Below, in pieces: positions 14,659 through 38,019 of a stretch of DNA of 64,000 bases. Below the pieces are notes generated by a model. It ran no database searches. It was not told the DNA's origin and saw nothing but the letters and a program-made list of their open reading frames with translations. Made by a program: the position numbers and the translations under genes. Location: the IMG/VR virus record IMGVR_UViG_3300005826_000294, positions 186,001 to 250,000 of that record; one strand, given 5' to 3'. Each line of letters starts with the position of its first letter. The first letter of the stretch is position 1.

Positions 14659-14862
14659 TTATTTATTAGGGCTTTTTGTCTTACCATAACGCTTATAAAT
14701 CTGAACACGTTTTTTATCACTTAATTCATTATCCCAAATATCCCCAACAATCTTATTAACTCTTTTCATAGAATAATCTGGGTTTTTCTTTTTTACTTCT
14801 TCTTTCATCTCATCAAACCATCCCTTTGGAGCTTTATGCTCAGCACCTACAGGACTTTTCTC
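14659..14862 (-). CDS. 67-codon -1-frame continuation of 14847..15557 (frameshift extension or homopolymer error)
   Basis: Open frame EKSPVGAEHKAPKGWFDEMKEEVKKKNPDYSMKRVNKIVGDIWDNELSDKKRVQIYKRYGKTKSPNK*; its TAA overlaps the GGAG RBS of the next gene. Confidence 0.65.
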   Translation of the reverse strand, partial: EKSPVGAEHKAPKGWFDEMKEEVKKKNPDYSMKRVNKIVGDIWDNELSDKKRVQIYKRYGKTKSPNK

Positions 14863-22520: not shown

Positions 22521-22751
22521 CTAGAAAGGATCGCCTGTATCAAAAAAGAATGGACTAACAGTCATACCGCCTATTGGTTCCTCTGGCTTTGTATCTCCAC
22601 GTAATCCAACAATATTTACAACGGAACTTACATCGCATTCCTCATTTTCTTCATCTTCGAGTTCAGATAGAATTTGATACACATCCATTGCTGAATGTAT
22701 AAATCCATGACTAATTAACTCATTAAAAAGATTGGAAATTATCTTTTTCAT
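22521..22751 (-). CDS. Hypothetical small protein
   Basis: ATGA overlap with upstream gene; degenerate hairpin tag. Confidence 0.55.
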   Translation of the reverse strand: MKKIISNLFNELISHGFIHSAMDVYQILSELEDEENEECDVSSVVNIVGLRGDTKPEEPIGGMTVSPFFFDTGDPF

Positions 22752-25700
22752 CCAACACCTCCAAATGGTGGAGTCATACTCATAATTGGATTAACATTTC
22801 TAGCAGTATCTAACCATGTTTCATATCTAGGAAAAATATCTTGGAATCCTCTTAATGGTTGATCAGTAGGAGTTGGAACAAAAGCATCTTGTTCTATAAT
22901 TTCAGGGTTTTTATATGGACAATTTTCTATTTCTTCAATTATTTTACGAATTTGTTTTGTATCTACTGGTGTTGGATCTTTTCCCATTTCACTAAACCAT
23001 TCAATTAAATTAACAAAAAAATCCTTAAAACCATATGCCTTTGCTTCTAAATAAGCATCTTTATTGCTCCATCCACCTTCTGTTCTAAAACGGGCTATAA
23101 CCCCTCCTGTTCTATCTGCTCCAAACCAACAATGAATATAAGTAGGTTTTTCTAATAATAATTCAGATATTCTATCTCCAAGTATCTTTCTTCCATAATC
23201 CTCTGATGATCCAGTTTCTATTGGAGCAGGAATATGATCCATGCCTATTTCTCCACACATTCTTCCAATTTCAGGATTATTATGTAAAGAAATAACACGC
23301 TCTACCCCCATATCTTTAAGGGTCTGTAATTGTTCTAAATTATCAATCATTCCACCACGGTATAATTTTTTAGGAACCACAATTCCAAAATTTCTTGGAA
23401 GTTTGTCAAATTTTCCTAATTTTGATAATGTTTTTCTATCTAATTTTCCGGTAGGTTTTAATCCATTAATAACCTGTAAGCAAGCAAGATTGAGAACTTC
23501 ATCCTCAGATATACATTTTGAATTTAACATTCCAATTAATTTAATAGCTTTTGTATCATTTATAGCTTTTTTATTAAACTTTATCGCATCTTTAATTTCT
23601 AAAATAACGGGATGAATTACAGGATCCATAAAAAGATCTATTCCTTTTTTTACTATATCATATTTTTTATTTAAAGCACAATATGTTGTAAATTCTAAAT
23701 CTGGTTCCGTCATTGATTCAGCAGGAAAATATTTATTTCTAATTTCATCTAATTTAAGACTAGCATCAATAGCCATATTTGGGAAAAGACCAGTCATATG
23801 TCTTTTAGTTTCTGCTTCTGTTTCAGATTCTCCTTTAAATCTATGACTAGGATTAATAATTTGTTCTGGATTTTTTTCTGGACCAATATGAACTCCCTCA
23901 TGAATTAAAGTTTCTACTAATGCTTTTTCTGTAGCTTGTTCTAATTGTTGAGCATTTGGTTGAGTAGATCCAAACATTCTCTTTACTTGTTCATTAATAC
24001 GATTTTTAAATATATGAACTTCTCTAGGATCTTTTCCAGGACCCATTTCTACATGCCCGAGTTGTCCAGGGCCTCCTTCAGGATGAACAATTATCTTTAT
24101 AATATTATTTTTTATATGAGGTGGAAGTTTAGCCAAAGCTTTTGCTACAGCAGTATCATATGGTTCTATAAGTATTTGAGCCCCTGGTGTTTTTACTTCT
24201 AAATCTTGAGCATCTTTGATAAAATACTTATTTATCCATTCAGCTCTTTCTTCAGGATCCATTTCTTCCATAATATCAATCTCATACAAAGTCATTTCAG
24301 ATCTTTTACGCTTTGGTTTGTTCTTTTTTTCTTTTTCTATTTGTTTTGCTAAATTGTCCCAATATTCTTCAAAGCCTTTCATCTCTTCATCATTGAAACC
24401 CTCAAATACTTCATCATGATCTTCATTAGCTCGTTTTGATAATTTAAAATTTGCTTGTTTTTTACCAAGATCAATCTCAGCAATTTTATCACCGCCAGCA
24501 AAAAATACTACATTTTTTGCCTTCCATTTTGGTAATTTTTCTAATGAAGGTAGTTCGACATTATAATCATCAATATAACCAATAGTTATATGAGGAACCC
24601 ATCCATGTTCCGATGGTAAATCAATAATATTACTAATAGCATCTTGAAGATCATTCTGTAAAGCATTTAATCCAACAGAATTAGGAATAAAAAATATTGG
24701 AACTCCATCATCTCCCTTAGAAAACATTCCTGTTCCCGCTATATACATAGATAATGGTTTATGATGAGAACATACTTTTTCAACAGATTTTATTATTGCT
24801 TTTCTTGTTATATTATCAATATCTTTTGCTTTTCCAAGATAAATAAGAGTTATATGTAATCCATCAGAACTTACACCTTCACCAATAAATTTATTTAACT
24901 TTTTAGGAACCATAATAGCAATCATAGCACCAGTATGTTTTTCTTTTGCTATTTTCAATAACTCTTCTTCATTATATCTATTTTTCCAAAATGAAAGTTT
25001 ATGCTCATCTTCTTCGTTTCCCCATAACAGAAGTTCTTCTTTAAGAGATGCTACTTTTCCAGATGATAAATATGTTTCTATTGTATTAGGAAGAATGTAT
25101 TGATTTTTTAGAGTACTTGGTTGGTGCCCTAGGTCTTTTGAAACATTTTCCAAAGCATTATTAAGTTCTTCCTTTAATTTTTTCTCCTTTTCTTTTTCTT
25201 CTTTTGGAAGAGTTCCTTTTCTTTGCTTTTTTAATTCTTTTTTTAACAAACTATTTGCCTCAGCACCACGAATATCTTTTGCAGTAATCTTAAATTTTTT
25301 CAAATACTTATTAACCATTTTTGGTGTAATTGTAAAAACTTTATCACCCTTTTTTTTATCTTTTATTAACTCTTTTAAAGCACTAACAGTTTCTTTATTA
25401 TTAACAATTTTTTCCTGATCTACACCAGATTTGCCGACATACTTAATTTTCGCTTTTCCACCAGAAAAAGTTATATGCTTAACTAACCAAGTTGTCACAC
25501 CATAATGTTTTCTTTCATCAGCAGAAAATTCATTACCAATTCTTTCTTTTGTATCATAAATTAAAGAAACAGCAATAGCAATCTGCTTGATTTCATCATC
25601 ATCAGATTTTAAATCTTCTTTAATCTTTTTAAGCAAATCAGAAACATTTTCTTCTAACTGTTTTATTTTCTTTTCTTTTTTCTTCCAACGCCTTTTTACC

Positions 25701-25801
25701 CACTTTTCATCATAAATATATGTAATGTTTCCACTTTCTTCTTCTCTTTTTTCAACATAATTTTTTGCTCGTTTTGAAAGATAAAACATATTAATCTCCA
25801 A
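22748..25801 (-). CDS. Multi-domain enzyme: topoisomerase IB core + 2H phosphoesterase + HExxH + PG-binding + Cys-dependent (Tyr/dual-specificity) phosphatase (likely start 25789)
   Basis: RIGN, YVGK, AKDIR, LGH, QY (TopIB catalytic set); HITL and HITI; LIHEGVH; GLKPTGKLDRKT; HCWFGADRTG. Confidence 0.85.
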   Translation of the reverse strand: MEINMFYLSKRAKNYVEKREEESGNITYIYDEKWVKRRWKKKEKKIKQLEENVSDLLKKIKEDLKSDDDEIKQIAIAVSLIYDTKERIGNEFSADERKHYGVTTWLVKHITFSGGKAKIKYVGKSGVDQEKIVNNKETVSALKELIKDKKKGDKVFTITPKMVNKYLKKFKITAKDIRGAEANSLLKKELKKQRKGTLPKEEKEKEKKLKEELNNALENVSKDLGHQPSTLKNQYILPNTIETYLSSGKVASLKEELLLWGNEEDEHKLSFWKNRYNEEELLKIAKEKHTGAMIAIMVPKKLNKFIGEGVSSDGLHITLIYLGKAKDIDNITRKAIIKSVEKVCSHHKPLSMYIAGTGMFSKGDDGVPIFFIPNSVGLNALQNDLQDAISNIIDLPSEHGWVPHITIGYIDDYNVELPSLEKLPKWKAKNVVFFAGGDKIAEIDLGKKQANFKLSKRANEDHDEVFEGFNDEEMKGFEEYWDNLAKQIEKEKKNKPKRKRSEMTLYEIDIMEEMDPEERAEWINKYFIKDAQDLEVKTPGAQILIEPYDTAVAKALAKLPPHIKNNIIKIIVHPEGGPGQLGHVEMGPGKDPREVHIFKNRINEQVKRMFGSTQPNAQQLEQATEKALVETLIHEGVHIGPEKNPEQIINPSHRFKGESETEAETKRHMTGLFPNMAIDASLKLDEIRNKYFPAESMTEPDLEFTTYCALNKKYDIVKKGIDLFMDPVIHPVILEIKDAIKFNKKAINDTKAIKLIGMLNSKCISEDEVLNLACLQVINGLKPTGKLDRKTLSKLGKFDKLPRNFGIVVPKKLYRGGMIDNLEQLQTLKDMGVERVISLHNNPEIGRMCGEIGMDHIPAPIETGSSEDYGRKILGDRISELLLEKPTYIHCWFGADRTGGVIARFRTEGGWSNKDAYLEAKAYGFKDFFVNLIEWFSEMGKDPTPVDTKQIRKIIEEIENCPYKNPEIIEQDAFVPTPTDQPLRGFQDIFPRYETWLDTARNVNPIMSMTPPFGGVG

Positions 25802-27233
25802 TAGAAACTAACAACTCAAAAATATTTTCTTTCTTATTATTTATAAAAATATCATAAGCACATTTTAAAATAATATCTTTATTAAGATTAATGAATTTAT
25901 ATTCATATTCTTTATTTAAACCTTCCCATTTATATATAATATTATAACCATTAATAGAACAATTATTTAATTTCTTAATAGTCTTATATAATAATTTAAA
26001 AAAACTACTTTTAGTTTTTTTATTAATTTTATTTGGATTAAAAAATACTGGATTGCCGTGATAAAAATCACCTAAAAATTCATAAATAGTATTTGTTGAT
26101 TTAACAAATCCATCAGCATAATAATTTATATTACTAATTTTTATATGCTTTTCTCTATTTTCTATGTTTAATTTATCTAACCAAACTTTACAACCTTTTG
26201 AAATTCTTTTAGCACATTTAGGACATCCATTTTTATTATTTCTATGATGAACATCAGAAATCCATTCATGACCTTTTTCACAAATCCACCACACTTTTTT
26301 CGTACTATTTAAAAACACATCATAAGGAGTTAAATCTCCATTTTTTTCATAATTCCATTCTTTTGATAATTCTGGATTTAGAGTTGCTAAACAATTATCT
26401 TTACAGAGTTTTCTATTACTACAATAGGGACATGAACCTTTATTTTTATAAATAATAGAACATTCCCATTCATGACCTTTTTCACAAATCCACCAGACTT
26501 TTTTTCCAGAACATATTCCAAACATTTTTGGTGTTAAGCTTTTATTTTTTTCGTAATTCCATTCTTTTGCTAATTCTGGATTTAAAGTTGCTAAACAATT
26601 GTCTTTACATACTTTTTTATTAGAACAAAAAGGACAATTCACTCCCAAATTTCTACTACTTATAAGAGCATTCCATTCATGTCCTTTTTTACATTTCCAC
26701 CAAACTTTTTTTCCAGAACATATCCCAACCATTTTTGGTGTTAAGTTTTTATTTTTTTCATAATTCCATTCTTTTGCTAATTCTGGATTTAAGGTTTCTA
26801 AACAATTATCTTTACAAATTTTCATATTAGAACAATATGGACAATCATTATAATTTCTATTATTTGGACTTTGTTTCCACTCATGACCTTTTTTACATAT
26901 CCACCAAACTTTTTTTGGAGAGTGTAAAAATACATCATAAGGAGTTAAATTTCTATTTTTTTCATAATTCCATTCTTTTACTAATCTTGGATTTTTAGTT
27001 GCTAAACAATTATCTTTATAAACCTTTCTATTACTACAATAAGGACATCCACAATTATTTGTTCTTGATTTTATTATTGCTTTCCATTTATGTCCTTTTT
27101 TACAAATCCAATATGCTTTTTTATGAGAGTGTGGAGTATAATTTTCAGGATTAAATTTATTCTTTTCATAATCCCATTCTTTACACAATTTTGGATTTAT
27201 TACTAATAGATTATATTCTTTACTTAATTTCAT
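25791..27233 (-). CDS. Free-standing putative endonuclease: five treble-clef zinc (DUF4379-like) repeats + Vsr/EDxHD-like nuclease
   Basis: KEWNYEKN...KKVWW.C.KGHEW...CP.C repeats; ADGF....NTIYEFLGDFYHG. Confidence 0.75.
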   Translation of the reverse strand: MKLSKEYNLLVINPKLCKEWDYEKNKFNPENYTPHSHKKAYWICKKGHKWKAIIKSRTNNCGCPYCSNRKVYKDNCLATKNPRLVKEWNYEKNRNLTPYDVFLHSPKKVWWICKKGHEWKQSPNNRNYNDCPYCSNMKICKDNCLETLNPELAKEWNYEKNKNLTPKMVGICSGKKVWWKCKKGHEWNALISSRNLGVNCPFCSNKKVCKDNCLATLNPELAKEWNYEKNKSLTPKMFGICSGKKVWWICEKGHEWECSIIYKNKGSCPYCSNRKLCKDNCLATLNPELSKEWNYEKNGDLTPYDVFLNSTKKVWWICEKGHEWISDVHHRNNKNGCPKCAKRISKGCKVWLDKLNIENREKHIKISNINYYADGFVKSTNTIYEFLGDFYHGNPVFFNPNKINKKTKSSFFKLLYKTIKKLNNCSINGYNIIYKWEGLNKEYEYKFINLNKDIILKCAYDIFINNKKENIFELLVSIGD

Positions 27234-27256
27234 TACTTCCCTTTATTTTACTATTT

Positions 27257-27649
27257 TTATTTAGGTTTTTTCATTTCTTCTGGAATAGATACTATTTGTT
27301 GTTGAGTTGTAGTAAGAAGTTTTGATAATTCTACAATAACCTGACTAGTAAATGCTGGATTAAGTCCTGATAATAGATTTTTTGTAATTGAAATTGCTTG
27401 TCCTATTGAAGCTGAAGGGGGAATTTTTTTAAGTCCCAATACTCCTGGATGTATTCGAATGATTTTTCCACGTAATTTTCCCATAAATCTACTTCTTTGT
27501 TTTTCAGGAACACGATAAAATATAAACTTAATAATTTTAAACAAAGAGTCAGCGGTAAGTTTTGTAGGATCTTGAGCTTGTTTTATATGTCTTTTAGATA
27601 ATTTAATCATTTTTTTTCTCAAAATGGTCCCACCAATTATTAGCATCAA
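27257..27649 (-). CDS. Hypothetical protein (likely start 27610, MIKLSKRHIKQA)
   Basis: ORF track; K-x-A/LSKR motif at start. Confidence 0.6.
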   Translation of the reverse strand: MMLIIGGTILRKKMIKLSKRHIKQAQDPTKLTADSLFKIIKFIFYRVPEKQRSRFMGKLRGKIIRIHPGVLGLKKIPPSASIGQAISITKNLLSGLNPAFTSQVIVELSKLLTTTQQQIVSIPEEMKKPK

Positions 27650-28277
27650 TGGGCAAACGATTATATTTTTTTGGAGTTGGTAATATAAATCCTGTTTTTA
27701 AAAGAGTTTCAAGTTCTTTCATTTTAGAATATTCAAAATCTGAACTATGAAGCATTCCAGAATTATATTTATTTCTTAACAGTTTAGCAATATTATAAGC
27801 TCTTAGTGCCGAAATTCCTGTTTTTAATTCCGATTCATTTACTTCAATTAACTTATCAATATCAATGTTCCTAAAAGAAAGAATATCTGGTAATAAAGCA
27901 TCCAAACGCTCTGATAAATTACTTTCTCCTTTTTTTTGAAGCAATGTTATAATTTTTCCCAATCTAATAGCATTTTCATCTTGGGAACAATTTCTAACTA
28001 CAGAAGAAATACAATTTGTGACTGCATCTGCTATATGAATTATTCCTTTACTACGAAGATCACTAGATACCTTATGCATCTCTGCAACAATATTTTCAAC
28101 GGCATGTTTAAAATATTGTATTCTTTTTTCTTCCTCATGGATTCTTTCCTTTGATGGTTTTTTTCCTCCAAACCATCTAAGAACTCTATGAGGCTTTGAT
28201 TTACTAATAAGAGCCCATTCAGTTTTTTTCGTATTTTTATTATATCTTTGAACCAACATAGAAAATTTTTCAAGCAT
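27603..28277 (-). CDS. Hypothetical protein with degenerate helical-hairpin tag
   Basis: MHKVSSDLRSKGIIHIADAV after FKHA. Confidence 0.6.
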   Translation of the reverse strand: MLEKFSMLVQRYNKNTKKTEWALISKSKPHRVLRWFGGKKPSKERIHEEEKRIQYFKHAVENIVAEMHKVSSDLRSKGIIHIADAVTNCISSVVRNCSQDENAIRLGKIITLLQKKGESNLSERLDALLPDILSFRNIDIDKLIEVNESELKTGISALRAYNIAKLLRNKYNSGMLHSSDFEYSKMKELETLLKTGFILPTPKKYNRLPIDANNWWDHFEKKND

Positions 28278-29133
28278 TTAAAGCTCCAAGATTAAAATCA
28301 ATTATAATATTTATCCAATTATTCCAGATATTTATTTCCATATTATTTTTACCAATATTACAAGTTTTACAACAAGAAACACAATTATTTATAATATAAC
28401 CAATATTATTATCTACTCTATCTAAACCTATGATACCTTCTGTAATAGTTCCACAATAATTACATGGTATTTCAAAAAATAATTTAAATTCATCAAAGGA
28501 TAAAGAAAACCTCTTTTTCCTTCTTTTAGCACTCCGACAATAATTTTTATACTGCGATAAAATAGAAAATTTATGTTTCACTTCCCTATTAATTATACGA
28601 GTATTGTTATATTTATTATATATAATTATTTGATATAAATATTTATACCATTCATTTAATGACATGGTTTGTTTTGTTTTATTACATATTTTACAACAAG
28701 AAACACAATTATCTATAAAGTATCCGTAATTATTATCTATTCTATCAATTCCTTTAGATTTAGATCCACAATAATTACAAGGTTTTTGATATAAATCATT
28801 AAATTCATTATGAGATAAAGAAAACTCTAAAGATTTTCTTTTAGCACTTGATTTATATATACTATATCTTCGGTTTTTATTGTCTTTTTGTTTTAGATAA
28901 TATTCTTTACTATATTTTTTTCTATTAGAATTTATATATTGTTTATTCTTATTGTAATATAACATATTTGATTTTAAAATATTATCTTTATGTTTTATAT
29001 AAGTTTCATGTCTTTTTTCACTTAATCTAGTTTTACATAAATTACATTGGGAACATAAACCATCAGGATTATATTTATCTTCCCAAAAATTATTATATTC
29101 CTTATATTCTAAACAATTACTACATTTCTTCAT
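28270..29133 (-). CDS. Free-standing endonuclease with two tandem HNH/His-Cys-like domains
   Basis: C.YCG...G(I/L)DR.DNN.GY...NCVSCC..CN..K twice; N-terminal CxxC finger. Confidence 0.75.
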   Translation of the reverse strand: MKKCSNCLEYKEYNNFWEDKYNPDGLCSQCNLCKTRLSEKRHETYIKHKDNILKSNMLYYNKNKQYINSNRKKYSKEYYLKQKDNKNRRYSIYKSSAKRKSLEFSLSHNEFNDLYQKPCNYCGSKSKGIDRIDNNYGYFIDNCVSCCKICNKTKQTMSLNEWYKYLYQIIIYNKYNNTRIINREVKHKFSILSQYKNYCRSAKRRKKRFSLSFDEFKLFFEIPCNYCGTITEGIIGLDRVDNNIGYIINNCVSCCKTCNIGKNNMEINIWNNWINIIIDFNLGALNA

Positions 29134-29420
29134 TTTCTATAACCAGTAGCTCTTCTTGTTAGTGATGTTCTAACAGATTTTTGATAATCTAATCCAGGCT
29201 CCCAGAAACATACAATATTATCACAATTTATATAAATTATTCCATTTTCTGGTACTTCTAAACTAATTACATTATTATTAACATCTAATACAACACCATA
29301 TAAAAATTCTTTATTAGCACTCCAAGCTTGATTGTATGTTATTGTCTCTGATATTTCTCCACAAGAAATATATAATTCTTTATCAATAAATCTGTTTTTT
29401 ATGAATTCAGCAACACCCAT
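29130..29420 (-). CDS. Hypothetical small beta-rich (Sm/LSm-like?) protein
   Basis: GGAG RBS; YGVVLDV...GIIYINCDNI pattern. Confidence 0.5.
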   Translation of the reverse strand: MGVAEFIKNRFIDKELYISCGEISETITYNQAWSANKEFLYGVVLDVNNNVISLEVPENGIIYINCDNIVCFWEPGLDYQKSVRTSLTRRATGYRK

Positions 29421-29463
29421 AATTTATCTCCATTATTTATTTTGATAATACTTTATTAATAGT

Positions 29464-32400
29464 CTATTCCAGATCTTTTCTGCGTTCTTTATCTATTCTA
29501 GAAGCATCCATTTGTTTTTTATTTAAAATAATTGCTTTAATATTTTTTTTATTTTGAAAAACAGCCTTAGATAATCTATGATAACCATCAATTAATTTAC
29601 CTTTATATAATAATATTGGATAATTAAGAGAGACTTCTTTAATTCTTTTGAACTCTTCTTTATATTTCTTTGGATTATCTAATACAATTTTAGGAGTTAT
29701 ATTTTTACCCCAAGCATTATGATCCATATTCCATTCTAATGAATTAACAGACACATCTTCAGGTTTAATATTTTCAGTCAGTTCAATTAACATATCAACA
29801 GACCATTCTCCACTATCACTAGTATATGTTTGACCTGCTCTTTTAGATAATTTAAAATCAGCATTAGATTCTTTATATTCCATAATCATCCATTTATTTC
29901 CATCTGTTTTAAATAAATTATAAGTTCCTTTTTCTTTTTTACCATTTAATTTAAATACTATTTTGTTTTTAGTTGAACTTATCTCTTCATATGTGCCAGA
30001 ATCATGAATTTTTACATCACCTGATCCATAATTTCCTTTTTCTATTTTCCCTTCAAATTTATTATATGAAATAGGATGATTTTCAGTTTTCACAGCGAGC
30101 AATCTTTCTTTTCCATTTGGCAATTTATGTTTAGGAACAGCCCAAGAAGACATAGATCCTTCATCATTTTCCAAACGCAAATCATAATGATTTCCAGCCT
30201 TTAAAGCCTTATGATTTTGAATTACAAAACGATGTTTGTTTTTTTCTTCAAGTTTTCCTTCAGGTTCAGGTGTTTCATCAAAATTTCTTTTTTTCTTATA
30301 TTTTGATAGTGAATCAGCTCTTTTACTTAATTTAAAAGAAGACTTTTTCTTTAATTCTTCAAATCCTCTAACTAAATCTTCCATATATATTAACATTTCT
30401 TCTGGATCATCACCATAATTTTGAATATCCTCAAAGAACTCTCTAAGAAGTGCCTCGGACTCTGGATCTATATCTTTCTGATTCATAAGAGCACCGACCT
30501 TAGAAAAAATTTGATGATGCGTATCACTCTTATTTCTAATATTTCTAATATTAACAACAGGTTCTGGATTATATTTCCCAGGCATAATAAGAGCTTGAAC
30601 TAAAGCATATTCTCCAATTCCAAAAGAAGTATCATCATTATTAAGAGCAACATGATAAAAATCACTATACATAATCTCACCAGAAAGATTTTCATTAGGA
30701 TTTCTTTTAGCATATTCAACAAGTTTATTATTTAATGGAACAGGAGCAGTCCCATTTACCCAATTTGGATTGGTAATAAACTTCATATATCCAGGTGGTA
30801 TTTTCCAAAGACCAATAAATTTAAGAACTTTTGGTCTTATAGACGTATGAGATCTTAATGGTTGTTTTTTAGGATTACTTCTAGGAAGAGAAAAATCACT
30901 TCCACTTGGTGGTTTATAACTTCTATATGGATTATAAGAAGTAGATTCATGATGAGCTGGAACTAAATTACATTTAAAACCAAATGAAAGATCATCCTCA
31001 GAAATTTGATCTCCAATCTTAGTAATAAAGAAAGTTCCTGGACCATTTCCATAAATCCCATCTATTTTTTGATCAGATAAAATATCTTCCATATGATAAT
31101 ATTCAAACCAATCATCACGAGATTCCATCATCTTAGAAACCCAAGAATGAAGAGCTGGAATATAAACATTATCTACTTTATCTTTTGTTGTAATTTTTTC
31201 TGTAATATTCTTTTGTTCTATATTTCCATCTTTATCTGCTATAAAACCACTATTTATATTTATATCACCTAACCATGATATAAACATACCTGGATCTAAA
31301 TGAGATGTTTCTCCTAATGTCTCATACATAGAAAGAACACGTTGTTTTGATCCATTAATTTTTGATTTTTCTATTTTTTTAACAATTTCAGTAATTGGTT
31401 TCCCAAAATTTCTTTGAATATCAATTTGTTTAGAAAACCAATCATTATAGGAATTAATAGCAATTTTATGCTGATCATTAAATATTTTTGCCCCTAAGAC
31501 AGATAAATACATCATTGTTTTTTGTGTTAAGTTCTGTCTCATATTCGCTTCTTGATCAGCTTCAATTCCTCCTAATCCTTCTTCTTCTTCTACACCAAAT
31601 TCTTCTTTTCCTACTTGGTCCCACTTCATATGTTGCCAAGGTTCCCAAAAATATCCACCTTTTCTATTTAATCCTTTTCCTCTAGCACTTCTTAATGTAA
31701 ATTTTACATAATCATGCGGACAAATAAAAGGAACATCTAATAATTCATCAGGAGGAATTCGTTGAGGTAAAATGTTAGGTAAAGATTCATCTTCAGCACT
31801 CTGAGATGAACCTACAACAATACCAAATCTTTTTTGTAAAACTACTATTGCTTTCGCACCAGCTTCTGTTTTCCAAAATTCATGATTACGATCTAAAGCG
31901 GTCATTGGAACTCTATTTCCTGGGCATCCTGAATTCGGACACCAAGTGTGCCAATATGGAACTGGTTCAGACTGAACTTGTAAACTATATTGTTTTTTTT
32001 CTAAATTATTAAGATCAAGTTTTGAATGCCTAATATCAGTACTAAGAGATATAATAGATTGTTCATATTTTCTCTTTTTATCTTCAAGTTCTGGAGTTTG
32101 ATTTTCTCCTAATTGTTCTATAACTTCATTTAATTTTTCTTGTAATTTAAAAACATCATTCTGTTTTCTAGACACATAATTTTCAAGTTTGGTAATTTTA
32201 TCTTTATTTTCTTCATATACTCTTTTACAATCTTCACAATACCAACGTTTTACAGGACCTTTTTCTTTAGAAGGGACCATAGCATTATAAAAAACATCCT
32301 TACTTTGTCTTTTTTGTTTTCTTGATTTACAATAAGCACAAACAGGAATTCTTACTTCTTTATATCCCTTATCTTGTGCTATAATTTTAGATATTCTTCG

Positions 32401-35400
32401 TGATAATGATTTATATATATATCCACCAAGTGGAACACTCCCGCGAGGAGGATCAACTCTATATCCAAATGAAAAATAAGTATTTGCGAGGTCTGTGATT
32501 GCTTCATTAATTAAAGAGATATATGCTTTTGAACTTGGAAGATCTGTTATAGGAATACCTTTTATCAATAAATCAATATCTCCTTGATCAAACATGCCGA
32601 AAGGCATACTACCGACATCTCCTTTTCTACCAAGTTTTAATTGAGAACTATTATTATCAAACCATTTCTTTCCAACACCCATAATAATTGCTGGAAGAAC
32701 CCATTTTTGTGCTATTTCAGGATTTTTTTTTAATTCTTCCCAAGCATACGGATCTTGGAAAAGTTTTGTTAAAGAAGGTCCATCTTTCATATTATCTGGA
32801 GAAAATAAATCTTTGGCATTAGCAGACATAACTGGACGCTTAATTTCCTCAGAATTAAACCATCTACTTAATACTACTCCATCTTTATCTCTAGGAGGTT
32901 CTAACTTTTCTCCAAAAATGGGAATTTTTTCTTTTGTATCTTCTTCTTCGTCTTCTTCCTCTTCTTTATATTCAGAAAGAGCTTCTCCCCATAAATCTTC
33001 CTTTTCTTCATCTCCAAGGAGATCAGAAAAATCAACATCTTTTTTTTCTTCAACTTCTTCAATTTCTTCTGGTTTTACAACTTGTTTAAATCCAAAATAT
33101 TCAGGTCTCTTTTTTTTTAAAACTTCTTCCTGTTTTTTTTCAACTTCTTCCTGTTTTTTTTCAACTTCTTCCTGTTTTTTTTCAGGAACACTTTCTATAA
33201 ATTTATCAAGTTTTTCCTGCTCAGTTTCAATCTCTTCTGGTTCTTCCTCTTGAAACTCAGGATTTTGTTCTAAAAATTTCTTAACTTCTTCATCATCCTG
33301 ACTCTCAGCTATTTTCCATAATTGTTCAAGATTAATTGGACTTTTTTTTACAGATGTTTTTAATAAATTGTTTGAAATTATATGTATTAAATTTTCTGTT
33401 TGATCTTTAATAGATGTAAATATATTTCCAGATTTTTCTACTGGCAATCCTGTCCAAATTCCATTTGCCCTTTTAACTTTACCCACAACGTCTGGATTTC
33501 CTGTAATTTTTAATCCAGAAATTATATTTGATTCTGCACCTAATAAAACAGCATTATTAATCATACCTATTGGTTTGTTTTGTTTAACAAAACTTTTTAA
33601 TAAATCTTTGACTTCTTTGTTTTTAGAAAAATTACAAACATCTTCCCCGCCACATACAATAAGGGCATCATATTGTTTAGTATTAATATCTTTTATTTTT
33701 TTCGAATTTATTAATGTTCCTTCAACACCCTCAACAACATTAAAAGTAGATATAATATGTGATTTAAACCCATATTTATTTATAAATATATTTTGTGTAA
33801 TTAAGTATTCTTTTTCAGAACACCCTGTTGGAGGAACCAAAATTGCTATTTGAGCAAATTTAGCATTAAGCATTTCGATAAATTCTGGATCAGGTTCATC
33901 AAAACCCATCCATCTTCTTTTCTCCATATGCTTTTCTAATTGACGTTCTTTTTCATTTGACTTCCAGGCATCGGCTTTCCATTCGGAAGATGGCCAATCA
34001 ATTTGTTCAAACTGAAAATTTTTTATTTCATTTTCTTGAAGTATATTATTAAATCCTTTTTTTACAACATTAGGCAAATCTTGTAGATTTTTTTCACCAT
34101 AAAATTGTATATCTGCTGGTTCATCACCTTTATATATAAATATTCTTCCCCGCCATCCTTCATTAGTTATTTGTTTTATATTATTATGTTGTGCTAATTC
34201 AATATGACCAAAATATTGTTTCTCACGCTTTCCATTGTTTATATTAAGATGATATGTAAATTTATTATTAATTTCATCCCATAACCATATATATTCTTTA
34301 TTTATTTTAGACGCTTTTAAATAAGCTTTCTTTGAAATAAAATCATCTGCCGCATTATATGCTCCTTGCTGACTATATGGTTCTTGACCTTGAGATGGAG
34401 CAACTTGTATAATATTTCCCTCTGGAAATGGAATATCTCCATAATCATATTTATTTTCATGTAAAGGTGCATTATTATAATTGTTTTCTGCTGTGTCTTG
34501 TTCTCCACCTAAAATTTTTTTAATGTTCCCATTGTTTTCTCCAAATGACTCAGGAACACGAATACTACCTTTATTATGTAGAGTGCTCACATCAGATCTC
34601 ATTCCACTTCCTTTAACAACACCAGTAGTCACATCTTCCCATTTTTCATTTAAATTTGTTAAAAGATCTTTTAATTCTTCACGCAATTTATCTATGGATA
34701 TTTCACTCTTCAATTTAAACTCTACATGAATACCAGATCCTCCACTTTGAAAAATTGTAGGAGTAGTCCCATATTTCTCTTTTAATTTTGAAGATAATTC
34801 TCTAGCATATTTTTTAGCTTTTTCTAATGGATAATTACCATGAATATCTAAATCCACGAAACCAAGATCTGTTTTGTTTCCAAATACCTGGTGAAAAGAC
34901 AAAAGACGCCGTTTAACCCAATAAAAATAATTATTAGGGTTTTCATCATTATTAGGATTATCATTAGTTATTACTATTTCTTTATCATTATGATTTCTTT
35001 TTAATATGGTTTTATTTTTCCCAACTCCAAGATAAATTAATACAGGCTTCCCTTTAATACGAGACATTATTTTCTTTCTTACTTCTGGTTTTTCATAATG
35101 TTTCCTAATTTCTCCACGAGTTAGTTTTTTGTCTTTATCAATTAAAACTTCCGACATTTTTTCTTTATCATCATCGGCAGAACTTATATTAATTGGTTCA
35201 AATTCAATAATGACAAATCTTTTATCTGGACCAAAACGATCTTCTAAAGATTTAGCCATTCTTTCACCATATGCTTTATTTATTCTTGTGATACTCATAA
35301 CTCTTTTAGTAATTATCTTAATATCAGCAATATTAGCTCCAGAATAACTTTTACATTTAACTTTATCATCAGGATTTACATTAACATCTCCTGGCCTAAT

Positions 35401-38019
35401 CGTATATGTTCTTTTTCCACTTTTAATATCTTCAGCATATTGATCAGGAAAATATATTGTTCCATTTTCAGTATATTGAGCACATTTTACAAGAATATTC
35501 CTTAATTTAGCTTCGGAAGCAAGATTTTTATATTTATTTATAATTGTATTTGTAATTGCTTTAACAACCTCTTCTTCTGTAAAATCTTTTTCATATCTAG
35601 TTTTAAAATCTTCAATAATTTCATTCAAATGTTCTTTATACCATTCGAATTCTTTTAACATTTGAGGTAAATATTTAGCATTAAATCCTTTTAATGGATC
35701 TGCTTGGGTTGGTTCTTCTTCTGGAAAACTTTCAGCATTAATTAAAAACGCATATCGCTTATCCTGAAATCCTGCTAATCCACCTTCAATGATATTTGTA
35801 GGCAATCCAGTCATTTTTTGAATAACTCCATTTGCCCTTTGTAAATAATGAACATGTGCTGGACCAAAAGGTTTTCTACTACTCAAAAATCTTCTAACTC
35901 TATATGGACCACTACCATTAGCAATAGCCATAAGTTGATACATATTATAGGCACCAGGAACATTTGGATTGTATTCATATTTAATAACATCACTAACAAG
36001 CATTCTCATTTTGTTCATAAAATCTGATTTTGAAACCCAATCAGACAAGTTCTTTAAAGAACTATTATTTCTAACACTTTTACTAGAAAAAGATCTATAA
36101 AATTTAGCTGATGTATCTGGATGTTCCATAGAAGTTATTAGTTGAGCTAAAGCACTTTTAGCTACACTTGGTGTAATATAGGTATCAGCAACATTTTGAA
36201 GTCTTAATAAATTATTAGGAGTCGGTTTAAACCCATATTTATTCTCAAGTAAATCAATATCAAATTCTTTTCCAATATATCTATTACCAATTTTTTTTAC
36301 AATCCCAGGGACATTACCTCTTGGGTTCATTTTAATTGAAGTGCCCTCTCTTCTTTTTACAACTTTATTGGGATTTTGTTTTATAAACTCTTCCACAGAA
36401 TTTTTATCGACAGGGACATTTTTCCATATATTTTCTTTGCGTATATTACGCATATTTTTCTTCCACTCATTTGAAAGTTCCTCTAACTTTTTAGGATCTA
36501 TGCCAGTTGCCTGTTCAAGTTTTGGATTTTTAGAAAGCCATTTCATAAAATATGGACCATGAACTTGAGTCAAACCAAATGAATTTCCTGAATCTCCACG
36601 AATCCAACTTTTATTATTACTTTCAAGTTTAGACATAATTTTAAATCCAAGTTCTGGATCAAAATTTAAACTTGCAGGCACCTTTGGTTCTCTAACATGA
36701 ATTGGATTAACTTTTACTTGTGATTTTAATTCTATAAGCAATTTATCAGGAGTTAAAGCTTCCGCTCTTTTTGAAAGTTTAAAAGAATTCATAGCTTTAA
36801 CCACCTTAAAATTATCAATATTTTTAGAATGAAATTCATTCATCGTAGCATCTTGGGGTTTTTTATCATCACGAAATCTTACAAACTTTTGATGCCTTAA
36901 TCCTCCAGGAACTCTTTCCTGAAATCCAATTTCAATTACAAATTTTCCTTTTTTTAATTTATCTTTTATAATTTTCTCATTTTCTTCAGAAAAATTTCCT
37001 ATATCACTAATATGATATAATTTTCCTTCATAATATTGTCCAAATAATGCTTTTAAATTACCTTTATCTGTAGTTTCACAATCATAAACTACATAATCAT
37101 CACTATCAGATTTACCAACTCCACCCTTATATTTAAACATAATTCCAGATGGTTTTGGTTCATTTTCACCCTTTTCTTTATATTCATATGGTTGATCTTT
37201 TAATTTTAATACAATTCCTTCTCCACCAGATTTAACAGCATTATTCATTACATTTTCCCATTTAGAAAATGGATATTGTTTTGTTATTAATATAGTATCA
37301 GTAGGTTTTATAATATTTTGTAATATTTTTCTTCTTTCTGAAAAAGGTTTTTTAGTTATATTATTACCTTTATACCATAAAATATCATAAAGATGTAATT
37401 TAATTTTTCCAGGTAATTCTTTCATTTTTTCTATTGCTTTATCAGAATTACTACCAGCAATTGATGTAACTTTTCCAATATCTTGTTTATTATTATTCCA
37501 ATAAACTAATTCACCTTCTACTAATGTTCCATCTGGAAGAGATTTAAGACCCCCTATTAATTCTGGAAAATTATCTGTTTTTTCATCACCACGGCGACTA
37601 TATAATTTAACTTCTCCATTTGATTTTATAGCTTGAGCTTTCCATCCATCAAGTTTATCTTCTATAATTATATTGTCTTTATTATAATCTTTTAATAATT
37701 CATCTGGATCATTAATTTGCGATAAACGCATAAGTGCCTTTGGAGATACTGAATCTGATGCTTCATTTATAGAGATATTTTCTAATTCTTTAAGACGATT
37801 TTCCATTTTTTCTATTTTTTCAGTTATAAGTGATGAAAGAACTTCATTGCCTTCAGCTTTTTCCAATCTCTCTTTTGTTTTAGGCAATTCATTTTTTAAT
37901 AAATCTTTCTCACATTTTTCGCACATTCCATGCGTTTTAGTATCTTCACTGAAATCGTCTCTTTCTTCTGAAAATTGAAATTCCTTGCACCATGAACAAT
38001 AATGATCTATTTTTACCAT
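29464..38019 (-). CDS. 2851-aa polyprotein-like multi-enzyme: Zn finger, ATP-dependent DNA ligase, lytic transglycosylase-like, ASCH, LigD-type primase-polymerase, DJ-1/PfpI, sigma70-region-2-like + Zn ribbons, LigD 3'-phosphoesterase, ParB/Srx-like
   Basis: EDKLDG, EGELV, EGIVLK, RHQKFVRFRDDK; LES...GDSGNSFGLTQ; IKSGKRTYTIR; VDLD and SGGSGIH; YDALIVCGG; Y.KKRNF..TPEP, FVIQ.H.A...HYDLRLE, SWAVPK, G.YGSG; IDGYHRL. Confidence 0.85.
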   Translation of the reverse strand: MVKIDHYCSWCKEFQFSEERDDFSEDTKTHGMCEKCEKDLLKNELPKTKERLEKAEGNEVLSSLITEKIEKMENRLKELENISINEASDSVSPKALMRLSQINDPDELLKDYNKDNIIIEDKLDGWKAQAIKSNGEVKLYSRRGDEKTDNFPELIGGLKSLPDGTLVEGELVYWNNNKQDIGKVTSIAGSNSDKAIEKMKELPGKIKLHLYDILWYKGNNITKKPFSERRKILQNIIKPTDTILITKQYPFSKWENVMNNAVKSGGEGIVLKLKDQPYEYKEKGENEPKPSGIMFKYKGGVGKSDSDDYVVYDCETTDKGNLKALFGQYYEGKLYHISDIGNFSEENEKIIKDKLKKGKFVIEIGFQERVPGGLRHQKFVRFRDDKKPQDATMNEFHSKNIDNFKVVKAMNSFKLSKRAEALTPDKLLIELKSQVKVNPIHVREPKVPASLNFDPELGFKIMSKLESNNKSWIRGDSGNSFGLTQVHGPYFMKWLSKNPKLEQATGIDPKKLEELSNEWKKNMRNIRKENIWKNVPVDKNSVEEFIKQNPNKVVKRREGTSIKMNPRGNVPGIVKKIGNRYIGKEFDIDLLENKYGFKPTPNNLLRLQNVADTYITPSVAKSALAQLITSMEHPDTSAKFYRSFSSKSVRNNSSLKNLSDWVSKSDFMNKMRMLVSDVIKYEYNPNVPGAYNMYQLMAIANGSGPYRVRRFLSSRKPFGPAHVHYLQRANGVIQKMTGLPTNIIEGGLAGFQDKRYAFLINAESFPEEEPTQADPLKGFNAKYLPQMLKEFEWYKEHLNEIIEDFKTRYEKDFTEEEVVKAITNTIINKYKNLASEAKLRNILVKCAQYTENGTIYFPDQYAEDIKSGKRTYTIRPGDVNVNPDDKVKCKSYSGANIADIKIITKRVMSITRINKAYGERMAKSLEDRFGPDKRFVIIEFEPINISSADDDKEKMSEVLIDKDKKLTRGEIRKHYEKPEVRKKIMSRIKGKPVLIYLGVGKNKTILKRNHNDKEIVITNDNPNNDENPNNYFYWVKRRLLSFHQVFGNKTDLGFVDLDIHGNYPLEKAKKYARELSSKLKEKYGTTPTIFQSGGSGIHVEFKLKSEISIDKLREELKDLLTNLNEKWEDVTTGVVKGSGMRSDVSTLHNKGSIRVPESFGENNGNIKKILGGEQDTAENNYNNAPLHENKYDYGDIPFPEGNIIQVAPSQGQEPYSQQGAYNAADDFISKKAYLKASKINKEYIWLWDEINNKFTYHLNINNGKREKQYFGHIELAQHNNIKQITNEGWRGRIFIYKGDEPADIQFYGEKNLQDLPNVVKKGFNNILQENEIKNFQFEQIDWPSSEWKADAWKSNEKERQLEKHMEKRRWMGFDEPDPEFIEMLNAKFAQIAILVPPTGCSEKEYLITQNIFINKYGFKSHIISTFNVVEGVEGTLINSKKIKDINTKQYDALIVCGGEDVCNFSKNKEVKDLLKSFVKQNKPIGMINNAVLLGAESNIISGLKITGNPDVVGKVKRANGIWTGLPVEKSGNIFTSIKDQTENLIHIISNNLLKTSVKKSPINLEQLWKIAESQDDEEVKKFLEQNPEFQEEEPEEIETEQEKLDKFIESVPEKKQEEVEKKQEEVEKKQEEVLKKKRPEYFGFKQVVKPEEIEEVEEKKDVDFSDLLGDEEKEDLWGEALSEYKEEEEDEEEDTKEKIPIFGEKLEPPRDKDGVVLSRWFNSEEIKRPVMSANAKDLFSPDNMKDGPSLTKLFQDPYAWEELKKNPEIAQKWVLPAIIMGVGKKWFDNNSSQLKLGRKGDVGSMPFGMFDQGDIDLLIKGIPITDLPSSKAYISLINEAITDLANTYFSFGYRVDPPRGSVPLGGYIYKSLSRRISKIIAQDKGYKEVRIPVCAYCKSRKQKRQSKDVFYNAMVPSKEKGPVKRWYCEDCKRVYEENKDKITKLENYVSRKQNDVFKLQEKLNEVIEQLGENQTPELEDKKRKYEQSIISLSTDIRHSKLDLNNLEKKQYSLQVQSEPVPYWHTWCPNSGCPGNRVPMTALDRNHEFWKTEAGAKAIVVLQKRFGIVVGSSQSAEDESLPNILPQRIPPDELLDVPFICPHDYVKFTLRSARGKGLNRKGGYFWEPWQHMKWDQVGKEEFGVEEEEGLGGIEADQEANMRQNLTQKTMMYLSVLGAKIFNDQHKIAINSYNDWFSKQIDIQRNFGKPITEIVKKIEKSKINGSKQRVLSMYETLGETSHLDPGMFISWLGDININSGFIADKDGNIEQKNITEKITTKDKVDNVYIPALHSWVSKMMESRDDWFEYYHMEDILSDQKIDGIYGNGPGTFFITKIGDQISEDDLSFGFKCNLVPAHHESTSYNPYRSYKPPSGSDFSLPRSNPKKQPLRSHTSIRPKVLKFIGLWKIPPGYMKFITNPNWVNGTAPVPLNNKLVEYAKRNPNENLSGEIMYSDFYHVALNNDDTSFGIGEYALVQALIMPGKYNPEPVVNIRNIRNKSDTHHQIFSKVGALMNQKDIDPESEALLREFFEDIQNYGDDPEEMLIYMEDLVRGFEELKKKSSFKLSKRADSLSKYKKKRNFDETPEPEGKLEEKNKHRFVIQNHKALKAGNHYDLRLENDEGSMSSWAVPKHKLPNGKERLLAVKTENHPISYNKFEGKIEKGNYGSGDVKIHDSGTYEEISSTKNKIVFKLNGKKEKGTYNLFKTDGNKWMIMEYKESNADFKLSKRAGQTYTSDSGEWSVDMLIELTENIKPEDVSVNSLEWNMDHNAWGKNITPKIVLDNPKKYKEEFKRIKEVSLNYPILLYKGKLIDGYHRLSKAVFQNKKNIKAIILNKKQMDASRIDKERRKDLE

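Follow-up and report, generated by a model that had tools for sequence, protein, structure and literature searches.

Several viruses process proteins of the capsid interior at short peptide signals. In phage T4, a capsid-targeting sequence (CTS) at the extreme N-terminus is shared by otherwise unrelated proteins of the head interior, many of them anti-host enzymes, and is removed by the prohead protease gp21. The peptide ends in the cleavage pattern of the protease, and the tagged cargo is diverse and turns over quickly while the tag stays constant (PMC3012670). The T4 peptide ends in L/I-x-E. In giant phages, the proteases phiKZ gp175 and SPN3US gp245 cut many head-internal proteins at a three-residue pattern (small residue, any residue, Glu), in some cases several times, removing both short and long N-terminal propeptides (PMC10052503). 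Herpesvirus assemblin is a protease fused to the scaffold, with a maturation site near the scaffold C-terminus that reads (V/L/I)-x-Ala followed by Ser. In Staphylococcus phage 80alpha, a short N-terminal motif shared by several head proteins and by the ribosomal protein L27 is removed by the host protease Prp. Polyvalent proteins of phages and conjugative elements join many unrelated enzymatic domains, are encoded beside head genes and are predicted to be delivered with the DNA. Proteolytic release of their domains by an embedded zincin-like metallopeptidase was proposed, while no shared delimiter peptide is described in the retrieved passages of that work (Iyer, Burroughs, Anand, de Souza and Aravind 2017, PMC5512222).

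The locus considered here lies in a 64-kb stretch of DNA (the window), which represents the head-morphogenesis module of an uncultivated, AT-rich jumbo phage (30% G+C, 11% Lys). Its giant proteins carry a reiterated seven-residue peptide, F-x-L-S-K-R-A, which most likely, although cleavage is only inferred, tells the capsid-maturation protease where to cut. As in T4, a short N-terminal peptide is shared by otherwise unrelated head-module proteins and the protease is predicted to have the same fold. The sequence differs from that of the T4 peptide, however, the putative P1 residue is Ala or Arg rather than Glu, and the tag is also reiterated inside giant fusion proteins, with up to 11 copies in one 2959-aa relative; both targeting and cleavage remain inferences here. 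The substrates of the phiKZ and SPN3US enzymes are single proteins that lose propeptides, not chains of enzymes separated at linkers, and the motif and phage lineage also differ, as the protease of this locus is nearest to phage G gp19. With herpesvirus assemblin, the locus shares the protease-scaffold fusion, the predicted fold and a conserved hydrophobic-x-K-x-Ala-Ser site 30-50 residues from the scaffold C-terminus, but P3 is Lys rather than hydrophobic, this is a bacterial virus, and assemblin does not process packaged enzyme cargo. The polyvalent proteins of PMC5512222 resemble the giant proteins in domain content (ligase, ParB-like, DJ-1, 2H, phosphatase, ASCH-like) and gene position, but here a conserved tag marks each module and resembles the putative sites of the prohead protease. 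In contrast to the motif cut by Prp, the tag resembles sites in the phage's own capsid and scaffold proteins.

The FKLSKRA tag in head-module proteins

The first-pass annotation had reported four exact copies of FKLSKRA at domain boundaries of two giant ORFs, encoded by different synonymous codons, and this observation was confirmed. The copies lie at aa 413, 2562 and 2722 of the 2851-aa ORF and at aa 452 of the 1017-aa ORF (22748-25801), which also carries YLSKRA (25766-25783) near its start. The codons differ (Leu CTT/TTA, Ser TCA/AGT/TCT/TCA, Arg AGA/CGA, Ala GCG/GCT/GCA/GCT) and the flanks are unrelated, so that conservation acts at the protein level. From the amino-acid composition, a given heptapeptide is expected about 1e-4 times in the 20,579 aa of called ORFs. 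The core LSKR occurs 7 times in the window, compared with a shuffled mean of 0.5 and a maximum of 3, and all 7 copies lie in four proteins encoded between the portal and the prohead protease. One of them (ANLSKRT, ORF 21817-22440) is doubtful, because homologues read NLPQRS at this position. Of the 12 KRA tripeptides in the window, 11 are found in head-module proteins.

The proposed location at domain boundaries holds where it could be tested. The ligase (Pfam 101-286, PHROG 97-408) ends just before site 413, the LigD phosphoesterase (2601-2704) is flanked by sites 2562 and 2722, a ParB/Srx-fold domain starts right after 2728, and the 2H domain (313-423) precedes site 452. The domain labels 'sigma-like' and 'transglycosylase' of the first-pass annotation were not confirmed by Pfam. 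The shorter K-x-A sites LVKCA, IKDA, AKFA and WKIA, which it had placed before other domains, are junctions that keep K-x-A in relatives, and at LVKCA and IKDA relatives carry the full LSKRA tag. In an AlphaFold model, the only two low-confidence segments each end at the Ala of a tag and are flanked by the LigD phosphoesterase and the ParB/Srx fold. A DNA-level repeat or slippery site was excluded, since the codons differ, relatives vary the second residue and the TTT-AAA reading frame does not form a canonical slip site. Internal translation starts were also rejected, because three of the four internal copies have no nearby Met.

The annotation had noted YLSKRA at the start of the 1017-aa ORF, but not that the tag is above all an N-terminal tag of autonomous modules, which is what makes it resemble the T4 CTS rather than a plain linker site. 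Examples are MFYLSKRA, MIKLSKRH, MEISKRA, MFPISKRA, MYISKRA and MKKFYLSKRA. N-terminal tags are present in 20 of 21 homologues of a 120-aa head-module protein, on the HExxH-phosphatase protein in 8 or more loci, and on topoisomerase and NUDIX proteins.

Table. Features of the head module, with coordinates in the window (strand in brackets; L numbers denote related loci)
Coordinates	Feature	Observations
29464..38019 (-)	2851-aa polyvalent ORF, putative cargo: ATP-dependent ligase, PrimPol-like, DJ-1, LigD 3'-phosphoesterase and ParB/Srx-fold domains, plus domains not identified	36 homologues in jumbo-phage contigs of up to 468 kb
36763..36783 (-)	Tag copy FKLSKRA, aa 413-419, directly after the ligase	Full tag at this position in most homologues that align across it
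35731..35754 (-)	Decayed tag position YAFLINAE, aa 756-763	Relatives read YAFLSKRG or F-x-LSKRA; many alignments end here
35479..35493 (-)	Degenerate tag LVKCA, aa 843-847, before the ASCH-like module	Relatives read LSKRA-x-Y-T-E; alignments start here
34324..34341 (-)	Degenerate tag FISKKA, aa 1227-1232, after the PrimPol-like region	Relatives read F-A-LSKR-[HDEYQ]
33853..33864 (-)	Conserved K-F-A junction (AKFA, aa 1386-1389) before DJ-1	K-F-A kept in most homologues; several alignments start or end within 5 residues
33307..33318 (-)	Conserved W-K-x-A junction (WKIA, aa 1568-1571) before the acidic linker	I-W-K-x-A kept in most homologues
30316..30336 (-)	Tag copy FKLSKRA, aa 2562-2568, before the LigD phosphoesterase	In an AlphaFold segment with pLDDT below 50 that ends at the Ala; relatives read LS[VI]REA or LK[LI]A
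29836..29856 (-)	Tag copy FKLSKRA, aa 2722-2728, between the phosphoesterase and the ParB/Srx-fold domain	In the only internal low-pLDDT segment, which ends at the Ala; in 21 of the alignments to homologues similarity stops a few residues upstream, and many of these homologues end there, so the last domain was appended through the tag
22748..25789 (-)	Second polyvalent ORF, putative cargo (about 1013 aa from the ATG at 25787-25789): topoisomerase IB, 2H phosphoesterase, HExxH domain, tyrosine-phosphatase-like domain	GGAG sequence 7 nt before this ATG
25766..25786 (-)	N-terminal tag M-FYLSKRA of the topoisomerase module	Relatives start MEISKRA (L005) and MFPISKRA (L006)
24428..24448 (-)	Tag copy FKLSKRA after the 2H domain	
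24209..24226 (-)	Degenerate tag YFIKDA before the HExxH domain	Aligns with the N-terminal MKKFYLSKRA of the stand-alone 514-aa protein of L003; eight or more relatives start this protein with the tag
23888..23902 (-)	HEGVH motif of the HExxH domain, a rival candidate protease	No Pfam peptidase family matches
27257..27610 (-)	117-aa head-module protein starting M-IKLSKRH (tag at 27587-27607)	20 of 21 homologues start M-x-[DN]-F-x-LSKR
16202..20263 (-)	Protease-scaffold fusion; protease domain about aa 60-260 (19484-20083)	Invariant D149-H150 (CKDHQSS at 19805-19825) and S201 (VSMGT at 19652-19666)
18887..18904 (-)	MFKSA-Y site before scaffold repeat 1; matching TKKEA-Y site at 18464-18481	K-x-A-Y-x-Q-G conserved before both repeats in the family: 141 copies in 150 proteins
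16295..16348 (-)	Scaffold C-terminal sites SFKRA-L (16334-16348) and TKTA-S (16295-16309), 48 and 35 residues from the end	[LIV]-x-K-[TQ]-A-S in the last 60 aa of 85 of 137 relatives; shuffled mean 9, maximum 20
5884..6111 (-)	First coding piece of the major capsid protein, with IVKYAS (6022-6039) and ELIKRA (LIKRA at 5932-5946) just before the conserved core	Matches phage G gp27, annotated as major capsid; sites conserved in 24 relatives; ELIKRA is the best non-tag hit of the tag HMM in the window
39834..44042 (-)	Portal protein (1402 aa, with inserted elements), with N-terminal INPKRA-S at 43974-43988	Two relatives show an equivalent site, V-T-P-R-R-A and I-S-P-K-I-A

Conservation among relatives, the predicted prohead protease and candidate maturation sites

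The 36 giant homologues vary in domain order and content but keep the tag at about six fixed junctions, with 57 LSKR copies in total. Homology breaks at these junctions: 57 of 59 internal tag copies have at least 3 BLAST alignment ends within 12 aa (null mean 19%, maximum 35%). Extra C-terminal domains are attached through a tag, and gene fission falls exactly at the tag. One relative (P0033) uses a different repeated delimiter, A-S-R-F-D-x-I-N-K-x-A, which still ends in K-x-A. The gene order terminase, portal, cargo, protease is conserved in 6 loci. No cultured relative was found: a megablast search returned nothing, and tblastn of the giant ORF matched only ligase domains of SPbeta-like phages. 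Phage G, the closest cultured phage by its protease, has no tags in its head module, and its proteome paper gives no cleavage data. A literature search for the motif string returned only German words.

The 1353-aa ORF 16202-20263 begins with a predicted prohead protease of the gp21/assemblin fold, followed by a repeat-rich, charged C-terminal part, and the capsid gene lies downstream. T4 gp21 and then the EBV, HCMV, PRV and HSV proteases are the top PDB matches of the AlphaFold model (pLDDT 73), although these matches are weak (E 0.01-0.2, best about 0.01; TM 0.3-0.45). In BFVD, the model matches phage G gp19 at E 2e-17, with 95 matches at E<=0.001, among them several annotated prohead proteases, and PHROG 18299 matches at E 2e-13. 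By sequence alignment alone, D149-H150 and S201, which contain the candidate catalytic His and Ser about 50 residues apart, are invariant in 30 sequences, and H227 is nearly invariant. Sequence searches of the protease, of a 411-aa protein and of the HExxH region against PDB gave nothing useful. The 411-aa protein (ORF 6962-8197) had been considered as the capsid protein, but was given up once phage G gp27 identified the real, split capsid gene. An Rfam search for introns in this split gene gave no hit at gathering thresholds.

A pattern ending in K-x-A recurs at the two classical positions of maturation, although cleavage at these sites is likewise inferred. In the capsid protein N-terminus, IVKYAS is invariant (24 of 24 relatives) and is accompanied by E-L-I-[KS]-R-A, and the scaffold C-terminus carries the same [LIV]-x-K-x-A pattern, in the form listed in the Table. 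The best sub-threshold hits of the tag HMM are the capsid protein (ELIKRA) and a portal-adjacent 90-aa protein, but the capsid match is not significant on its own (E 0.46). Bare [KR]-x-A is neither enriched nor depleted in the giant ORFs (14 observed, 16.6 expected), and six copies lie away from the identified junctions, at least two of them (aa 1070, 1516) inside Pfam-matched domains, so that it was dropped as stand-alone evidence. In addition, a second helix motif common in head proteins contains K-x-A by construction and inflates K-x-A counts.

The full tag itself gave only 1 hit in 150 protease-scaffold proteins. A scan of 80 loci of the wider protease family for [LI]SKR yielded an overall rate equal to background, showing that the tag is restricted to one subclade. 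About 50 related phages encode a similar protease (about 55-65% identity) without any tag, indicating that the protease does not need the tag. HExxH domains are carried by 7 of 8 tag-positive loci, but by only 2 of 51 tag-negative loci.

Maturation tag, docking signal or target of another protease

The interpretation given in the first-pass annotation, that the assemblin-like protease cuts the giant ORFs after K-x-A to release separate enzymes inside the head, is partly supported. The extended motif is non-random, is selected at the protein level and sits at module boundaries of proteins encoded in the head module, whereas bare [KR]-x-A is not enriched in the giant ORFs. The explanation favoured here, with moderate confidence, is a T4-CTS-like maturation tag on packaged polyvalent cargo. 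Each module begins with the consensus (K-K-x-S)-F-x-[LI]-S-K-R-A, at the extreme N-terminus when it is its own gene and in a flexible linker when modules are fused. In this view, the tag is a strong version of the cleavage pattern [LIV]-x-K-x-A used by the phage's own prohead protease. Inside the prohead, the protease would cut after the tag, separating the fused enzymes and trimming the short N-terminal tags, as T4 gp21 removes the CTS of internal proteins. Because stand-alone proteins keep the tag, it probably also acts before cleavage, for example in recruitment to the scaffold core, which is again an inference. The analysis itself establishes the motif, its conservation and position, the fold of the protease (as predicted) and the presence of strings of DNA/RNA-repair and other enzymes encoded between portal and protease, while packaging into the capsid, delivery into the host with the DNA, cleavage, the scissile bond and the responsible enzyme are deduced. 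The scissile bond may lie after A or after K-R, since the residue following K-R in the 120-aa family is H, Q, Y, F, S or D (mostly H or Q) more often than A, and some junction variants (LS[VI]REA) shift the register.

The tag could instead be an uncut docking or sorting signal that recruits modules to the scaffold core, portal or DNA, or orders their ejection, with internal copies being retained N-terminal tags of fused genes that serve as extra docking points. This possible but less likely reading would account for the N-terminal tags of stand-alone proteins, where removing 7-10 residues achieves little by itself, for gene fission and fusion exactly at the tag, for the dispensable Ala in one family, and for the decay of several internal copies (YAFLINAE, LVKCA, FISKKA, YFIKDA), as expected of relics. 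However, the internal copy at aa 415 is kept in full form in most homologues that align across it although its flanks diverge, one tag per protein would be enough for docking, and a separate helix-hairpin motif is a better candidate for this role. The location in disordered linkers ending at the Ala and the pattern shared with the capsid and scaffold sites also speak against it. Cleavage by a different protease is likewise considered unlikely. One candidate is the HExxH (zincin-like) domain of the cargo, acting in the head or after ejection, as proposed for the metallopeptidase domains of polyvalent proteins (PMC5512222), and another is a host protease comparable to Prp. The HExxH protein itself starts with the tag, the more distant tag users L005, L006 and L007 carry other HExxH motifs inside their polyproteins (HEL[VT]H and HEITH occur in relatives), and the same prohead protease family works without tags in about 50 relatives. 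The association of HExxH domains with the tag is real, but it comes from one clade and counts as roughly one evolutionary event, so it is not decisive, and HExxH may simply be one more cargo domain. Furthermore, no Pfam peptidase family, including the polyvalent-protein metallopeptidase, matches these regions, the HExxH families differ between lineages sharing the same tag, L013 and L014 have the HExxH domain but almost no tags, and the tag pattern matches the conserved capsid and scaffold sites, regarded as prohead-protease substrates.

A function unrelated to proteolysis or packaging, such as covalent modification of Ser or Lys, a basic DNA contact between repair enzymes, or a degradation signal removing unpackaged toxic enzymes, is very unlikely. 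The S-K-R core is basic, its Ser is invariant, the cargo consists largely of nucleic-acid enzymes and a phosphatase-like domain is encoded in the module, but nothing points specifically to any of these functions. The tag also sits on non-DNA enzymes (NUDIX, DUF5661, phosphatase), and its strict placement at the N-terminus or in a linker and its restriction to the head module are what a packaging or maturation signal predicts. A chance or compositional artefact of a Lys-rich proteome is refuted by the observed counts, the differing codons and the copies in homologues.

A bolder and more tentative reading, considered somewhat less likely than not, is that a large uncultivated jumbo-phage lineage has a portable cargo tag, such that any enzyme acquiring F-x-[LI]-S-K-R-A at its N-terminus becomes a head-packaged module that the protease can release. 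Modules could then be strung into polyproteins of 2000-3800 aa or split apart again without losing function. This would be a natural plug-and-play system for loading a capsid with a DNA/RNA-repair and anti-defence toolkit (ligase, PrimPol-like, 3'-phosphoesterase, topoisomerase IB, 2H, NUDIX and poly(A)-polymerase-like domains). It would show that polyvalent proteins are processed by the capsid protease rather than by their own metallopeptidase, and would provide a defined tag for packaging designer proteins.

Polyvalent proteins are widespread in phages and plasmids, and how they are packaged, and whether they act as one chain or as released enzymes, is unresolved. A conserved delimiter that looks like the capsid protease's own putative sites gives this question a concrete, testable answer for one large lineage, whose protease family has over 1700 representatives at 50% identity. 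The tag also marks module borders and true start codons in otherwise unannotatable giant ORFs, and it offers a short sequence that could be used to load proteins into capsids. On the favoured reading, it extends the T4 capsid-targeting principle to a distant jumbo-phage group and to fused cargo, and it suggests that these phages inject a complete end-repair kit, which bears on how they survive host nucleases.

Gene content of the head module

All substantial ORFs lie on the minus strand of a sequence with a G+C content of 30%, which derives from an uncultivated jumbo phage on a contig of about 300 kb. No cultured phage is close. PHROG and Pfam scans identified, in transcription order, a large terminase, a portal protein with inserted elements, a 508-aa protein, a 2851-aa ORF (ATP-dependent ligase, weak LigD PrimPol, DJ-1 and LigD 3'-phosphoesterase), several HNH endonuclease genes, a small protein, a 1017-aa ORF (topoisomerase IB, 2H phosphoesterase and a tyrosine-phosphatase-like domain) and a 1353-aa protein, whose N-terminus matches 'head maturation protease' families. 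The same gene order recurs in six related metagenomic loci.

Coordinates of features in the window and in related loci (L001, L003, L006 and L007, related metagenomic loci)
Position	Feature
44054-45904	Large terminase
39834-44042	Portal, 1402 aa
27257-27610	Small protein starting M-IKLSKRH
21817-22440	207-aa protein upstream of the protease, with the ANLSKRT copy
L001:22180-22803	Homologue of the 207-aa protein
L003:21341-21964	Homologue of the 207-aa protein
18300-18904	Two repeats in the protease-scaffold ORF (aa 454-650)
1686-2210, 3205-3414, 4574-4642, 5884-6111 (minus strand)	Coding pieces of the major capsid protein gene
2291-3046, 3514-4401, 4774-5712	Three ORFs of 251-312 aa between the capsid pieces
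6962-8197	411-aa protein; second peptide module (aa 124)
9294-12458	1054-aa protein; second peptide module (aa 290)
12459-12818	119-aa protein
14847-15557	ORF with second peptide module (aa 201)
15575-15964	ORF with second peptide module (aa 93)
53973-54848	ORF with second peptide module (aa 104)
12815-13966, 20274-20918, 20908-21750, 25791-27233, 28270-29133, 45892-46767, 59396-60679	Seven HNH or endonuclease-VII-type homing endonuclease genes
L007:4604-16078	P0033, a 3824-aa relative with a different delimiter
L006:13102-13812	Trypsin-family serine protease

The homing endonuclease genes are scattered through the head module, and the one at 28270-29133 also matches Srd/sigma-70-decoy families in its C-terminal part. 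The portal is much longer than the 617-673 aa found in L001 and L003 and matches the phage G portal in three separated blocks, with endonuclease-like and intein-like matches in between. The portal of another related locus, L002, carries intein and LAGLIDADG Pfam hits. This suggests inteins or other insertions inside the portal gene. The major capsid protein gene was located through phage G gp27, to which its last piece is 47% identical, and is split into at least four coding pieces. The position alone of the three intervening ORFs suggests endonuclease-bearing introns, but Rfam finds no intron at gathering thresholds, and relatives have the pieces joined (loci L091-L099).

Occurrence and conservation of the tag

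The first-pass annotation had reported four copies of FKLSKRA and a YLSKRA at the start of the 1017-aa ORF, and this observation was confirmed at exactly the positions it gave. The codons for Leu, Ser, Arg and Ala differ between copies and the flanks are unrelated. Composition predicts about 1e-4 copies of any given heptapeptide, and the core LSKR occurs 7 times against 0.5 in shuffles. All seven copies are in four proteins between the portal and the protease, although the ANLSKRT copy is doubtful, because homologues read NLPQRS there. The 207-aa protein that contains it has a conserved N-terminus, A-N-L-[SP]-[KQ]-R-[STV]-S-E-I-S-x-E-E, which resembles the tag only in this window.

The tag is N-terminal as well as internal. 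The 1017-aa ORF almost certainly starts at the ATG preceded by GGAG, which gives M-FYLSKRA, and among 21 full-length homologues of the small protein, 20 begin M-x-[DN]-F-x-L-S-K-R. In relatives, the HExxH-phosphatase protein, a topoisomerase IB protein, a NUDIX protein and others begin with M-(0-4 residues)-h-x-[LI]-S-K-R-A.

Thirty-six homologous giant proteins, sharing 33-64% identity in their best local alignment, carry 57 LSKR copies, with the logo K-K-[AS]-S-F-x-L-S-K-R-A-x-[YF]-[AT]-[DE]. Mapped onto the 2851-aa protein, these copies fall at about six fixed places, three of which are full tags here (aa 415, 2564 and 2724), while three have decayed here (YAFLINAE, LVKCA and FISKKA) but are full tags elsewhere. 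Many homologues end a few residues before site 2724, indicating that the ParB/Srx-fold domain was appended through a tag. The YFIKDA sequence of the window aligns with the N-terminal MKKFYLSKRA of a stand-alone relative, so a gene boundary falls exactly at the tag. Of 59 internal tags, 57 have at least three local-alignment ends within 12 residues, compared with 19% for random positions (maximum 35%). The AKFA and WKIA sites, which the first-pass annotation had listed as shorter K-x-A sites, are also conserved K-x-A junctions. More distant relatives use [LI]-S-K-R-A up to 11 times in one 2959-aa protein. Variants of the tag include F-x-LSKRA, P-[LI]SKRA and ISKRA. In contrast, P0033 has almost no LSKRA and repeats a different delimiter, [AT]-S-R-F-D-x-I-[ND]-K-x-A, four times, which still ends in K-x-A, so the tag appears to have been replaced within one lineage.

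An AlphaFold model of aa 2540-2851, built from a 23-sequence alignment (mean pLDDT 78), has only two segments below pLDDT 50, local residues 1-29 and 179-189, and both end at the Ala of a tag. They are flanked by a predicted LigD phosphoesterase (E 1e-12 to solved structures) and a predicted ParB/sulfiredoxin fold.

Across relatives (L005, L006 and the window), the tagged cargo adds up to an end-repair and RNA-repair kit, comprising ATP ligase, PrimPol-like, 3'-phosphoesterase, topoisomerase IB, 2H phosphoesterase, poly(A)-polymerase/CCA-adding-like, NUDIX, DJ-1 and ParB-like domains. The same domains are distributed differently between one giant ORF and several smaller ones.

The predicted protease and its putative sites

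The N-terminal 260 residues of the 1353-aa protein have 1767 relatives in the representative library, and the best 150 of these are mostly proteins of about 1000-1600 aa, the length of a protease-scaffold fusion. D149-H150 and S201 are invariant. The best PDB matches of the predicted structure are T4 gp21 and then five herpesvirus proteases, albeit with weak scores. Against predicted viral structures it matches phage G gp19 at 2e-17, and 95 matches reach E<=0.001, among them several annotated prohead proteases. Many protease-scaffold relatives (P0045, P0049, P0054 and about 25 other proteins) match the query in two stretches, with several hundred (about 110-360) extra residues inserted after query residue about 122, which suggests inteins inside the protease domain.

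The full tag is absent from the protease-scaffold proteins (1 hit in 150). However, the pattern [LIV]-x-K-x-A, to which L-S-K-R-A conforms, is conserved where capsid proteases classically cut. K-x-A-Y-x-Q-G precedes both scaffold repeats, which are about 60 residues long (G-G-G-G-V-N-x-P ... V-D-P-T-N-D-Q-L-K-T-K-G-D-K-Q-M-E-G-Q-G-M-E) and conserved in outline across the family. [LIV]-x-K-[TQ]-A-S lies 30-50 residues from the scaffold C-terminus in 85 of 137 relatives (shuffled mean 9, maximum 20). The N-terminus of the capsid protein carries I-V-K-Y-A-S, invariant in 24 relatives, and E-L-I-[KS]-R-A directly before the conserved core. ELIKRA was also the best non-tag hit of the tag HMM in the whole window, and eleven of the twelve KRA tripeptides in the window are in head-module proteins.

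The tripeptide pattern alone carries little weight. Bare [KR]-x-A is at the chance level in the giant ORFs, and six copies lie away from the junctions identified here, at least two of them (aa 1070 and 1516) within Pfam-matched domains. In addition, a second recurrent module of 20-25 residues, with the consensus L-[VI]-K-[LI]-A-[ND]-x-L-D-x-x-G-[LF]-x-x-x-A-[DN], contains K-x-A by construction. It is found at N-termini, at C-termini and inside many head-module proteins (39 pattern hits in 7 loci), including five ORFs of the window and many proteins in L005, L006 and L007. It looks like a helix-turn-helix docking hairpin and may be the real capsid- or scaffold-binding element. One protein with this module, the 411-aa protein, belongs to a family with a nearly invariant N-terminus, M-S-x-E-W-x-x-S-x-V-M-x-E-F-x-K-[IV]-A-x-E-x-G-L-I, in 29 of 31 database matches, and its 1054-aa and 119-aa neighbours share a weaker version.

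Interpretation of the tag

The first-pass annotation had inferred that the assemblin-like protease cuts the giant ORFs after K-x-A, and this interpretation is partly supported. The Ala is often replaced in the small-protein family, and among 80 loci of the wider protease family the tag is confined to the closest subclade, which also has giant cargo ORFs and an HExxH domain fused to the phosphatase (aa 529-800 of the 1017-aa ORF for the HExxH domain in the window). Other tag users carry different HExxH motifs in their polyproteins, but none of these regions matches a Pfam peptidase model. A cargo-borne metallopeptidase, as proposed for polyvalent proteins (PMC5512222), therefore remains a live rival to the prohead protease, as does a host protease. 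A trypsin-family serine protease with a lipoprotein-like N-terminus is encoded inside the head module of L006, a tag-using relative, but no counterpart was seen in the window.

The principle of such a signal is known from T4, from phiKZ-like phages and from the polyvalent-protein concept. In the papers searched and read, no description was found of this conserved tag, its reiteration inside fusion proteins, its role as the breakpoint for domain shuffling, or its resemblance to the capsid and scaffold sites. While the tag, its conservation and its position were observed directly in the sequences, packaging, cleavage, the scissile bond and the responsible enzyme are inferred.

The tag is kept on stand-alone proteins, so it belongs to the downstream module and must act in that context, which argues for a recruitment or maturation signal rather than a mere linker. 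Internal copies are kept under selection while their flanks diverge, so they act at junctions, which argues for cleavage. This combination is what the T4 capsid-targeting sequence does with gp21 (PMC3012670), and giant phages such as SPN3US cut several head proteins at a short motif (PMC10052503). The tag is therefore read as a maturation signal, and probably also a targeting signal, on packaged polyvalent cargo, which would be cut by the gp21/assemblin-fold protease, most likely after the Ala.
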